Assembly: GCA_002269645.1 (NCBI GenBank)
Contig: NIVC01000143.1
Span: forward strand, 124,001 to 188,000
DNA: 64,000 nt
Source of the DNA: Macrostomum lignano
Taxonomy: Eukaryota
Direction of reading: 5' to 3'
The notes under the pieces are model-generated. The model was not told the origin of the DNA, did not search any database, and saw nothing but the letters and a program-made list of their open reading frames with translations. The position numbers and the translations under genes are program-made. Numbering within the stretch: position 1 is the first letter of the stretch; the number at the start of each line of letters is the position of its first letter. Below, piece by piece: positions 36,901-39,229 of this stretch.

Positions 36901-38784
36901 TCACGGGGACCAGCTGTTCACTGCTTCGGTGTCGACCAGCATCGGTGGCCAGACTGCAGTGTTGAACACTACTCGTCACCTGACTCGAGGCTACGTGACA
37001 AAACTCTGGGGCAGTGGACCTCGCGCGTACACCGTCACTCGGAGTGAGCACTTTATCGAGCTGAGCGATTCTATCAGCACGTTGAAAATCAGTTTCGACA
37101 GCCTAGGAAGACTAGTGGACACGATGCTTCACGTAGCTTCGGCAAGGGTGTTTGTCCTGTCGGTTCACGCCTATTCAGTAGGCAGGGTGCAGGAATTGGC
37201 CCATCGCATCGGCAAGGACGATGACAATGTGTTCACTAACGTCATGTACGTCCGCGATCTGCGCTCTCGAGTGATCCGAGTAGATCGCAAAGTCCCAGGC
37301 CGCTCGGTCGACCGGGAGGAGTTCGAATACAAATCGAACGGTCGGTTTGCTAGACGCGTCAGCCAAAATCGAACCTACTCTTACTCGTACGACTCCCGGG
37401 GCCTGCCAACTTCTGTGGGCAAGGCTGAGTACATGTTTGACTCTGACGGATTTCTCGCTCGTCGCCGCGATCTTAAGTCGCAAGGAGCTCAGGAGAGCTT
37501 CAAGTTTGACGCATCTGGAAAGCTGTTGACAGCGCAGTGCATTAACGGGGCTAGCGACTGCTACAGAATTCGCTACCTCTACGACGGTCGACAACGCTTA
37601 GTTGCACGTCAAGACATGCTGACGCCGACCCGTGATTTCCAGCTGCTTTACGCAGATCCGCTTCAGCCAAACCGGATAACGCACGTCTATTATCCTCGAA
37701 AGAAACAGTTGTTGGCTTTCACCTACGAAGATCGAGCTGGTCGTCTCGTGGCAGTGGATCTCCTGTCCAATAGTGCAGGTAGCAGCCAGCGATTCTACGT
37801 GGCCTGCGATCGACTGGGCTCTCCATTGGCGGTGTTCAACTCCACAGGCGACAGTGTGCTTCGACAGGACTACAGCAACTCGGGCCGGTTGTTGAATCCA
37901 TCGATTAACCGACTACCGTTCCGATTTCCGTTTGGCTATCTGGGCGGACTGCACGACGCGGACACGGAGCTGGTCTGGCTGCCAAGTCGCTCGGACTCTC
38001 GGCTGCCGGTTCGAGTCTACGATCCCGTGTCCGGCCTGTGGGCGGCTCCGGACTATTCCGACCTCTTCCAGCGCCTGGCGAGGGCGCAGCAGTCGGCCAG
38101 CGCGAGTCCCCAACTGCTGGACCTCTACACATTCGATCCGTGGCAGGGCTCGGAGGACGATGTCTACAGTCCGAACACTGTCGGTCGGCCGGACTTCTGG
38201 TTGCGCGCCTTCAACTTGGACCTGCCTCACCTGCTGGCCGAGCCGGCATTGCGGTCCATACAAGCCGCGACTTCTAAACTGACGTCACCGCTGACGTCAT
38301 TCTCCACAGGCGGTTCCGTCCTAGTCGAAGCCCTGGCAGCGCAGATGCGCGGGTTTAACCAAGGAGAAATTTCTCGCGGCTCATCTTCTACTAATTTTGA
38401 TGACAATTTTTCACAGCGAATAATTCTCAATGCCACTAAAAGAAACGCTCTTCCTCACGGATACCTGGCCACTTGGCAGCCGGCGTCATCAATCGTCAAT
38501 GTATTCAACAGTGGAGCATCTGACTTCGACTCTGCCAGAGCTTCGGTGATAAATAACACCCGGTTGACTGGCTGCGCCACTCGACAGGACGACGACCGAT
38601 GGCTTTGTCGGTTGCAGCGGGATGCTGCGCCAGCCGATGCAGGACCGCCAATACGACTGGAGGGCGAGTTGGAGACTTTTGAGGTGACTGGCAAAGGTGG
38701 TGCTTAAATGATTTTCCAACGTTGATACTTCTTCCCACCCAGATGCATCTTAAAGAACCAATTTATTTGATGAAGCAAACCTAA
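725..38784 (+). CDS. TENM: Teneurin-like type II membrane protein gene, multi-exon, 5' part outside window, 3' end uncertain
   Basis: Phase-consistent GT-AG exon chain in canonical teneurin order: TM, Ig-like (GFWSAQ...[11 protein letters not shown]), 8 EGF repeats, [19 protein letters not shown] ([14 protein letters not shown]), YD shell, RHS core (GYLGGLHD...[12 protein letters not shown]). Confidence 0.95.
1026..1880. repeat. Degenerate ~22-bp minisatellite (CTCATTGTGTCACTC core)
   Basis: Direct inspection. Confidence 0.9.
1912..1959 (+). CDS. Possible 48-nt symmetric teneurin microexon ([16 protein letters not shown])
   Basis: cag|agccg acceptor and G|gtgaag donor, phase 1-1, open frame; weak sites and no recognisable homology. 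Confidence 0.25.
2221..2833. repeat. 20/21-bp minisatellite GAGAGTGACCAGGATAGTA(A)G
   Basis: Direct inspection. Confidence 0.95.
2894..3056. repeat. (CT)n microsatellite
   Basis: Direct inspection. Confidence 0.98.
3490..4078. repeat. (AGAAT/AGAAC)n pentanucleotide repeat
   Basis: Direct inspection. Confidence 0.95.
4765..5300. repeat. (GTCT)n microsatellite
   Basis: Direct inspection. Confidence 0.95.
6030..6690. repeat. 15-18-bp minisatellite GATCCTTGACCC(ACT)n
   Basis: Direct inspection. Confidence 0.9.
6750..7051 (+). CDS. TENM: Teneurin exon: linker and Ig-like domain
   Basis: VLARRRQ...[49 protein letters not shown]; cag| acceptor and |gtgagg donor. Confidence 0.85.
7068..9385. repeat. 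21-bp minisatellite CCATGATCCTGACACATTAAC and variants
   Basis: Direct inspection; starts about 15 bp after the exon donor. Confidence 0.97.
9834..11045. repeat. C-rich 14-16-bp minisatellite CTCTACTCTCCCC(C)A
   Basis: Direct inspection. Confidence 0.9.
11860..11971 (+). CDS. TENM: Teneurin exon: end of Ig-like domain
   Basis: [32 protein letters not shown] resembles the teneurin YLDSGxWHLAFYNDG motif; ttgcag| and |gtgagt; not in the ORF track. Confidence 0.85.
12008..12572. repeat. 31/28-bp minisatellite CAGCCTCCCAGATCCTCAGTTGCTGGGC(CAC)
   Basis: Direct inspection. Confidence 0.95.
12639..12749 (+). CDS. TENM: Teneurin exon: EGF1
   Basis: [37 protein letters not shown]; phase 1-1. Confidence 0.9.
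12840..13034 (+). CDS. TENM: Teneurin exon: EGF2-EGF3
   Basis: [65 protein letters not shown]. Confidence 0.92.
13023..13229. repeat. 28-bp minisatellite spanning an exon/intron junction
   Basis: GGTGTCAGAATG|GTGAGTCA(TT/GG)TAGATG, 7 full copies plus a partial. Confidence 0.95.
14570..15030. repeat. 22-bp minisatellite GTCATACTTGATGTCATAGAGGC-like
   Basis: Direct inspection. Confidence 0.9.
15140..15361 (+). CDS. TENM: Teneurin exon: EGF4-EGF5
   Basis: [14 protein letters not shown]...; EGF5 [23 protein letters not shown] has Phe in place of Cys3, a teneurin hallmark. Confidence 0.92.
15398..15840. repeat. 11-bp minisatellite CCAGAAACCAT
   Basis: Fills almost the whole intron. Confidence 0.95.
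15863..16051 (+). CDS. TENM: Teneurin exon: EGF6-EGF7
   Basis: [63 protein letters not shown]; |gtaagt donor. Confidence 0.92.
16080..16752. repeat. ~23-bp minisatellite ATGACAACCCGGGTAG(A/C)AACCAC
   Basis: Direct inspection. Confidence 0.95.
17467..17933. repeat. (GTCT)n microsatellite
   Basis: Direct inspection. Confidence 0.97.
17971..18150 (+). CDS. TENM: Teneurin exon: EGF8 and start of Cys-rich region
   Basis: [13 protein letters not shown]...WHCVC...[12 protein letters not shown]; strong pyrimidine tract before ccacag|. Confidence 0.9.
18294..18501 (+). CDS. TENM: Teneurin exon: Cys-rich region
   Basis: [17 protein letters not shown]...[16 protein letters not shown]; |gtgagt donor, phase 2. 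Confidence 0.92.
18891..19268. repeat. 15-bp homogeneous array AGCACCAGGGGCGCC
   Basis: About 25 identical copies; same unit at 56901-57492. Confidence 0.97.
19785..20630. repeat. 20-bp minisatellite with alternating variants (40-bp dimer)
   Basis: CCCATCTCTTCCTAATCTA(C/T) alternates with CCCAT(T/C)TCTCCCCAATCTA(T/C). Confidence 0.9.
21308..21737 (+). mobile_element. tRNA-derived CORE-type SINE with (ATT)n tail
   Basis: A-box-like gcagcttagtggt, B-box gggttcgattc at about 21359, core tgtgtccttgagcaagacactt...cagttcacccagctgtaaaatggg resembling the MIR/CORE consensus, about 130 bp ATT tail. Confidence 0.7.
21808..22012. repeat. 30-bp minisatellite TGTCTGTAGAGGGTGTGTCTGCAGTGAATG
   Basis: Direct inspection. 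Confidence 0.9.
22167..22918 (+). CDS. TENM: Teneurin exon: TTR-like and FN-plug domains
   Basis: [14 protein letters not shown]...DGSFTLVV...[13 protein letters not shown]...[23 protein letters not shown]. Confidence 0.92.
23007..23147 (+). CDS. TENM: Teneurin exon: end of FN-plug
   Basis: [24 protein letters not shown]...[13 protein letters not shown] resembles VSVGYEYESC...GGWTLDKHH. Confidence 0.9.
23499..25061 (+). CDS. TENM: Teneurin exon: NHL beta-propeller and start of YD shell
   Basis: GVLHMGDG...[17 protein letters not shown]...[18 protein letters not shown]...VAGRPPHC...[15 protein letters not shown]. Confidence 0.93.
25071..25475. repeat. ~22-bp minisatellite AAATTAGAAATCTAAGGAGACT
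   Basis: Begins about 10 bp after the donor. Confidence 0.93.
26060..26985. repeat. 15/16-bp minisatellite CTAGTTTGGGATCAT(T)
   Basis: Direct inspection. Confidence 0.93.
27823..28228. repeat. (GTCT)n microsatellite
   Basis: Direct inspection. Confidence 0.95.
28896..31208. repeat. 18-21-bp minisatellite GATGCTTGCTATCTG(A)G3-8
   Basis: Constant core with a variable G-run. Confidence 0.97.
31865..32575. repeat. CT-rich composite minisatellite (CTCAGTGTCTACTTCTCTCTCT.. units)
   Basis: Direct inspection. Confidence 0.85.
32745..32995 (+). CDS. TENM: Teneurin exon: YD shell
   Basis: Phase 1 acceptor ccccag| fits the 25061 donor; ...[16 protein letters not shown]|gtgagc joins the next exon to give [16 protein letters not shown], resembling RLRVHNRNLLSLDFDR. 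Confidence 0.7.
33120..34470. repeat. Two adjacent CT-rich composite tandem arrays (~40-bp and ~60-80-bp units)
   Basis: GAATCTCAACCCACTGTCTAATCTCCTTCTC and CTCAGTCTCCCAATCTAATTAACTCTC units. Confidence 0.85.
35053..35270 (+). CDS. TENM: Teneurin exon: YD shell
   Basis: [13 protein letters not shown]...[17 protein letters not shown]...VYFKYT; |gtgagt donor. Confidence 0.8.
35440..35680. repeat. 20-bp minisatellite CACACGTCACTCCTAATGAC
   Basis: Direct inspection. Confidence 0.88.
35776..35977 (+). CDS. TENM: Teneurin exon: YD shell
   Basis: Phase 2 acceptor ttgcag|; [12 protein letters not shown] is a YD repeat; ATG|gtaaat donor. Confidence 0.8.
36410..38683 (+). CDS. TENM: Teneurin large exon: YD shell, RHS core, internal linker, start of ABD-like region
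   Basis: Many YD-type repeats ([34 protein letters not shown]) and GYLGGLHD...[12 protein letters not shown]; ends at donor GAG|gtgact or reads through to TAA at 38707. Confidence 0.93.
38743..38784 (+). CDS. Candidate short terminal teneurin exon ([13 protein letters not shown])
   Basis: cttcttcccacccag| acceptor after a 59-nt intron, phase 0; AATAAA at 38919-38924 in AT-rich downstream sequence. Confidence 0.4.
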   Translation: MHLKEPIYLMKQT

Positions 38785-38918
38785 AATGCCAATTGTCTTT
38801 CCTAATTATGACATGCTTCGAAGCGCTACATGATTTTTAAACTAACATAAAAAATGAAGCATCGTGGCAAGCAATTGACCTTTAAAAATGAAGAAAGTCA
38901 AGTTGTTTAAACGATCTC

Positions 38919-38924
38919 AATAAA
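38919..38924 (+). terminator. Candidate teneurin polyadenylation signal
   Basis: AATAAA downstream of the candidate stops at 38707 and 38784. Confidence 0.35.
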
Positions 38925-39229
38925 AAACTGATTTTTATAACAAGAAATTGAAGCTGAAACAGAAAAATATCTCTAATGTCTATATTCGTTTGTTTAAATG
39001 CGGCACTTTCATTATAACAAAGCAACACCGGAAAATGAATGCATACAAATTGATTGCTTTCTACTTTAATTGAGCCTTCGAGACTCTAATTCTCGAAGTA
39101 AGAGTGCGATGGTGTCACGAGCTTCTAAAAAACTGCTACTTGTTCTTGTAAAATATTTTTTAAAGTCCAAAAGTTATATAATGTTATAAAATGTTGTGCT
39201 GATATAAGTTGATGCAAGTTTCATTCTGA

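Follow-up and report, generated by a model that had tools for sequence, protein, structure and literature searches.

A divergent teneurin paralog of Macrostomum lignano that probably terminates before the Tox-GHH/TCAP module

Introduction

The question raised by the stretch of Macrostomum lignano DNA analyzed here (64,000 nucleotides; contig NIVC01000143.1 of assembly GCA_002269645.1, positions 124,001 to 188,000 of the forward strand; referred to below as the window) is whether its teneurin-like gene ends without the Tox-GHH/TCAP module, and whether the stop codon that closes its reading frame is the one in use. In solved teneurins, an internal linker of about 126 residues follows the RHS core, lies inside the YD shell and seals it; the chain then leaves the shell via a gap, and the ABD (about 120 residues) and Tox-GHH (about 87 residues) are located outside (PMC5851990). 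An initial annotation of the window had proposed that this gene retains only the start of an ABD, lacks Tox-GHH, and represents a derived teneurin class with an empty YD shell.

The gene is probably, though by no means securely, a genuine, lineage-specific and highly divergent Macrostomum teneurin paralog with a coding sequence that ends at position 38707, as judged from the sequence features described below. A literature search for Macrostomum in combination with teneurin found no papers.

The tail of the last coding exon

The gene lies on the plus strand, and its C-terminal part is organized as follows.

36410-38707, plus strand: last coding exon, 765 codons and TAA; second half of the YD shell, RHS core, internal linker and a short divergent tail
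38018-38053, plus strand: motif at the end of the RHS-associated core, aligning with YD..GRW..PD of teneurin-4 and all relatives
38054-38413, plus strand: internal linker (BLASTP against P0004, profile alignment)
38414-38704, plus strand: divergent tail of 97 codons where the first part of the ABD would be expected; Tox-GHH not detectable
38705-38707, plus strand: TAA stop, ending an open reading frame (ORF) of 793 codons

The ORF comprises 36326-38707, and the exon proper starts at 36410 after an acceptor ending in CCCACAG; the junction at its start (DNSSM/PGRISDP) was taken from the M. lignano UniRef fragments P0006/P0153. The exon is matched by Pfam TEN_YD-shell (3e-26) and by the teneurin-2/3/4 and Ten-m entries of the PDB (1e-20 to 2e-27, with the core motif aligned). 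Similarity to P0004 continues through the linker (BLASTP, 2e-18) and reaches about position 38413, and the conserved linker pattern LYxF...WL..FN.D...LL is visible in the profile alignment.

The core motif is followed by 217 residues in this gene versus 325-365 in other teneurins (16 from an exhaustive HMMER search), a shortfall of about 110-140 residues at the C-terminus; the labelled comparison teneurins come from a hemichordate (Saccoglossus teneurin-3-like), a tick and a wasp (Dermacentor and Trichogramma teneurin-m), a snail (Gigantopelta teneurin-m-like) and a fish (a Coilia Tox-GHH protein), and include two M. lignano paralogs. Every full-length tail in the comparison set ends in a Tox-GHH-type motif. 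A 399-position profile of the teneurin tail matched the ORF at positions 1-253 only (E 8e-29; linker at about 1-180), and 27 residues remain beyond the aligned stretch. In the multiple alignment, the ORF ends at about the relatives' ...D(I/V)R(I/V)H..., upstream of their ...IRYG..., and the segments that the relatives carry beyond this point are ...IRYG..., a long helix (HA..RA...AW..E) and the terminal W..E..L...G.V.GY...FVP.

The 97-codon tail has no Teneurin_ABD (PF23538) match in Pfam. With an ABD-only profile it scored 4-7 bits (E 0.7-7, Z=2600), compared with 12-14 bits for two M. lignano paralogs, and its pairwise ABD identities (11-19%) lie towards the bottom of the range covered by the paralogs (12-26%). 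Queried by itself against PDB sequences, the tail returned chance matches only, to galectin-3 and cysteinyl-tRNA synthetase (both E 1.5). Of the ABD-like start initially described, the roughly 97 residues at the ABD position stand, and their likeness to an ABD is one of position only; no more than the first three quarters of the domain could be present.

A local dip in the GC content of third codon positions (GC3), to 0.38, was observed at the linker/ABD boundary (38360-38510) within the open frame, together with an acceptor-like aatttttcacag/ at 38416. Relaxed constraint or the recent recruitment of sequence might explain the dip. An internal intron of 64 nucleotides at 38353-38416 (weak donor, good acceptor) was considered and rejected as unsupported; the frame would shift into early stops.

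Search for a Tox-GHH coding sequence

Pfam found no Tox-GHH (PF15636) match in the tail. Of four full-length tails in the same run, three passed the cut-off and served as positive controls (P0003, 5e-7; P0004, 6e-13; P0007, 3e-24), and P0002 fell below it, with a weak match at 0.023. In the three plus-strand frames of 38200-40950, searched with stop codons replaced by X, no family whatever was matched at E<=10. Similarly, when the tails of five relatives were used as tblastn queries, all matches beyond the ORF were noise.

A 106-position profile of the missing part (ABD end plus Tox-GHH) was run with all filters off against the window in six frames (2600 segments of the 64 kb). Nothing scored within 38.7-64 kb, and the top match in the window, at 8.2 bits (E 0.31), fell in a tandem-repeat ORF (7593-8675). 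In a leave-one-out control at the same database size, every relative was recovered, at 18.7-120 bits (P0003, 46 bits; P0002, 18.7 bits, E 1.6e-4), so that a Tox-GHH exon should be detectable even at the divergence of P0002, the most divergent paralog known; an exon more divergent than P0002, or one split by an intron, might escape the profile. The initial observation that no Tox-GHH precedes the next gene thus held in the Pfam, tblastn and profile searches, which confirm for the sequence at hand that there is no Tox-GHH/TCAP coding sequence anywhere in the 64-kb window.

Signals at the 3' end

The following features surround the stop.

38684-38742, plus strand: hypothetical mini-intron of 59 nucleotides, GAG/GTGACT ... 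CCCACCCAG/ATG, which would join a frame of 13 codons (putative)
38708-39234, plus strand: unique AT-rich 3' flank, probable 3' untranslated region and intergenic DNA; all frames closed, no copy elsewhere in the window
38919-38924, plus strand: AATAAA, candidate polyadenylation signal, 212 nucleotides past the stop; the sole AATAAA/ATTAAA in 38600-39600

Over 38414-38704, the codon-usage log-odds, trained on the exons of the same gene, amounted to +0.21 bits per codon in frame (linker, +0.18) and to -0.09 and -0.33 off frame, and downstream of the stop no frame has positive log-odds. The GC content drops from 0.5-0.65 before the stop to 0.27-0.35 immediately after it, and no plus-strand open segment of at least 50 codons was found between 38708 and 39600. 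The donors of the gene are G/GTGAG or GTAAG at 10 of 11 junctions, and the ORF end has two GT sites, GAG/GTGACT and AAAG/GTGGTG, both off-consensus for the gene. The first of these is the donor of the 14-codon exon that had been proposed as an alternative end, and it differs from the gene's donors; a short ATG..TAA frame is indeed present at 38743-38784. Whether or not the mini-intron is spliced, the predicted protein would end within about 15 residues.

The stop at 38707 and the AATAAA at 38919 were correctly placed by the initial annotation, and the duplicated block upstream of the next gene, put by it at about 39230, begins at 39235 by blastn. The teneurin locus is therefore bounded 528 nucleotides past the stop, since the tandemly duplicated unit of the neighbour begins there. 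No transposon or breakpoint signature was found in 38300-39240, which has no repeats within the window and trivial inverted repeats only. Taken together, the persisting codon bias, the fall in GC content, the off-consensus donors, the AATAAA and the neighbouring duplication favour real termination at this stop.

Upstream exons and domain content

The remainder of the gene, in eukaryotic sequence with long introns packed with tandem repeats, is predicted as follows.

729-1016, plus strand: exon with an ORF ending in a hydrophobic stretch; candidate transmembrane (TM) segment, splicing presumed
about 6870-7050, within ORF 6677-7606, plus strand: GBD_Tenm3-like exon (Pfam GBD_Tenm3; splicing presumed)
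12614-13040, 15127-15375, 15856-16068, 17958-18146 and 18293-18484, plus strand: EGF exons (tblastn)
22090-23158, plus strand: TTR and FN-plug (Pfam and exon mapping)
23492-25060, plus strand: NHL and start of the YD shell (Pfam TEN_NHL, 2e-24)
32735-33001, 35047-35271 and 35762-35977, plus strand: YD shell exons (exon mapping)

The EGF repeats of the family are present, with EGF_Teneurin matched in ORF 15118-15852 (Pfam, 5e-15). FN-plug_TEN1-4 was matched at 3e-6, and TTR_TEN1-4 at 1.1e-5 (25.7 bits, slightly below the curated cut-off of 27 bits). If the probable TM and GBD_Tenm3-like exons belong to the same gene, it covers 38 kb of the window or more. The ORF at 6677-7606 passes directly into a tandem repeat of HDPDSLT units. 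All upstream exons are open and conserved, and the long exons (544 and 765 codons) are uninterrupted.

The M. lignano UniRef entries A0A1I8G4F9 and A0A1I8I5W2 ('RHS repeat protein') share 86-98% identity with the individual exons over 24677-36646 and supply the splice junctions. This level of identity points to M. lignano, perhaps to another homeolog or assembly of it, or to a very close relative. The public annotation of the gene is thus fragmentary and misnamed, because both models end 2 kb before the end of the exon.

Comparison with related proteins

The canonical teneurins (TENM1-4, Ten-m/Ten-a; 6FB3, 7BAM, 8R50, 8FIA) and the gene in the window are alike in domain order and linker motifs, with a type-II TM segment (a candidate here), EGF, TTR, FN-plug, NHL, YD shell, RHS core and linker in common; in contrast to them, the gene lacks Tox-GHH/TCAP and a recognisable ABD, and the overall identity is 23-30%.

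The closest full tails are those of the M. lignano paralogs A0A1I8JFC7/A0A1I8GWK1 (P0002/P0152) and A0A1I8IIU1 (P0003), with 38-39% identity over the shell. P0002 and P0003 belong to the same divergent flatworm clade, and their ABD is also barely detectable. Unlike the window gene, however, these paralogs ('Tox-GHH domain-containing protein') run about 130 residues further, through ...LEVRVDSG-LLSASLR..., a long helix and W..Q.EL...G..GY...FVP; A0A1I8JFC7 and A0A1I8IIU1 thus retain the Tox-GHH module that the window gene lacks. The designation as a derived class is therefore too strong for one gene in one species with closest paralogs that keep Tox-GHH. P0002 and P0152, which represent the same paralog, show a short frameshift-like difference exactly at the ABD end (RVDSGLLSASLRCSRLSFE versus SRRLRPAVSFSSLQPF), which suggests indel variation between homeologs or model errors at this position.

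L004/P0004, the closest relative not belonging to the M. lignano proteome, encodes the shell end, linker, ABD and Tox-GHH in a single ORF, and since this tail is uninterrupted, an intron in the tail is not a general feature. The teneurin of a more distant locus (L005) is split by ORF callers into separate 'genes', which gives rise to database proteins that look ABD-truncated (P0031, probably P0063).

Bacterial teneurin-like proteins and RHS shells of the TcB/TcC type also have a YD shell and RHS core, after which comes a short C-terminal region (about 100-200 residues), and this short polymorphic domain is cargo kept within the closed shell (PMC5851990, PMC13018210). The window gene differs from them in that its post-core sequence is the metazoan internal linker, with no bacterial toxin domain, and in having EGF repeats, TM and introns. 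The notion of an empty shell did not survive the comparison with solved teneurins: the internal linker, which fills the lumen in the latter, is present and conserved, and from its retention it follows that the lumen should be as full as that of any teneurin. By analogy with these structures, the missing part is most plausibly an external appendage and not shell content. The 97-residue remnant is probably unable to form a canonical ABD, because the helix wrapped by the ABD is missing.

The proposed protein would thus comprise TM, GBD-like, EGF, TTR, FN-plug, NHL, YD shell, RHS core and internal linker, with translation ending in vivo at the TAA at 38705-38707, and would lack the distal ABD strand(s), the long helix and the entire Tox-GHH/TCAP module. 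The linker would still fill the shell and exit it, and a role as type-II adhesion receptor may be kept via the EGF, NHL and YD-shell surfaces; a TCAP-like peptide or Tox-GHH-dependent contacts would not be possible.

Alternative explanations

Several observations weigh against a genuine, naturally shortened paralog, and each of the two alternatives draws on some of them. The only database models of the gene (A0A1I8G4F9 and A0A1I8I5W2) end mid-exon at 36646, before the tail. The ORF end falls mid-domain, an outcome also expected from exon loss or from a recent truncation, and GC3 is down to 0.38-0.52 across the final 350 nucleotides, which fits relaxed constraint. Furthermore, no ortholog that shares the truncation was found in the homologue searches and metagenome scan: a word-indexed search yielded a single bacterial RHS protein when the whole last exon was the query and nothing when it was the tail, and thus no near-identical sequence in which conservation of the stop could be judged; a metagenome scan with a five-sequence alignment returned three distant loci (27-39% identity) and no ortholog. 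Finally, in the more distant L005/P0031 the ABD is interrupted by a 180-nucleotide phase-0 intron, and Tox-GHH has a last exon to itself.

8930-9115 of L005 (Joint Genome Institute metagenome contig Ga0194135_10001076, eukaryotic): ABD intron, just before ELKLSSGD..ITVRYG

In the alignment, this intron is at most about 10 residues from the ORF end in the window, so that the gene could credibly have reached its present state by losing a terminal exon.

As a recent polyploid, M. lignano has several homeologs of each gene. The gene could accordingly be a recently truncated or decaying copy or allele, whose 3' end was lost by deletion, rearrangement or assembly error from a normal gene with ABD and Tox-GHH; we regard this as unlikely, though clearly not negligible. 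Besides the mid-domain end, it is favoured by the GC3 drop together with the very weak ABD similarity over the last 97 codons, by the UniRef fragments that at 86-98% identity per exon imply at least one further copy, and by the 13-kb tandem duplication that begins 528 nucleotides downstream and might mark a linked rearrangement. Against this reading, the upstream exons are all open and conserved, and the in-frame codon bias in the last 97 codons equals that of the linker; moreover, 38300-39240 carries no repeat, transposon or breakpoint signature, and no degraded Tox-GHH remnant is present in any downstream frame.

A still less probable explanation is that the stop is not used, and that an unconventional donor near 38684-38697 joins an undetected terminal exon that encodes the missing module, located outside the window past both copies of the neighbour, or too divergent or too finely split to be recognised. 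The separate Tox-GHH exon of L005 is a precedent, the phase-0 GAG/GTGACT and the good acceptor-like CCCACCCAG/ are available, and P0002 was recovered at 18.7 bits only, so that a more divergent or bisected exon could be missed. On the other hand, the six frames of the whole window gave no match, the AT-rich 38708-39600 has no plus-strand open segment of at least 50 codons, the donor candidates are off-consensus, another same-strand gene, in two copies, occupies the following 25 kb, and the L005 intron is only about 180 nucleotides long.

Neighbouring genes and repeats

Downstream of the teneurin-like gene, the window contains a tandem duplication of the next gene.

39235-52195, plus strand: unit 1 of the duplication, next gene (EGF/laminin-G/TM; blastn blocks, Pfam EGF and Laminin_G)
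52196-64000, plus strand: unit 2, running off the window end (blastn blocks)

The unit is about 13 kb long, with a block identity of 77-95%. The blocks pair 39235-39394 with 52196-52348 (77%), 39862-40169 with 53434-53732, 42220-42793 with 58100-58689, and 45360-45801 with 62610-63051. The duplicated gene encodes EGF repeats and laminin-G domains and has a TM exon at 49163-49504; its architecture is Crumbs-like or neurexin-like. A retroelement remnant (ORF fragment 63159-63617; RVT_1, 2e-6) lies within its second copy.

Numerous long tandem arrays (ACTG x316, 21-mers, 22-mers, 11-mers, 15-mers) fill the introns and the intergenic DNA and give rise to long spurious ORFs on both strands; one 21-mer family is common to both copies of the duplicated gene.

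40903-42168, 42770-43071, 48104-49038, 52813-53363, 56903-57493 and 59367-60768: tandem arrays
12.0-12.7, 15.4-16.7, 17.4-18.0, 18.8-19.3 and 28.8-32.5 kb: tandem arrays on the teneurin side

Implications

A teneurin that keeps the superfold and lacks Tox-GHH would be a new form of the protein, and the evidence for it comes from a single copy in a genome that is polyploid and rich in repeats. If the gene is a decaying homeolog, or if its last exon is missing from the assembly, the finding amounts to an annotation note for such a genome. It is conceivable, and we put this forward tentatively, that Macrostomum maintains and expresses a natural 'delta-TCAP' teneurin, which has shed Tox-GHH/TCAP and the ABD end and kept the adhesion superfold and linker. 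The roles of the teneurin ABD and Tox-GHH are debated, with TCAP peptide release, a vestigial nuclease fold and dimer contacts under discussion; if the tentative reading is true, the external C-terminal domains would be dispensable for at least one teneurin function. Macrostomum is a flatworm tractable by transgenesis and RNA interference, and a truncated but otherwise complete paralog beside full-length paralogs in one animal would allow the contribution of the module to be compared.

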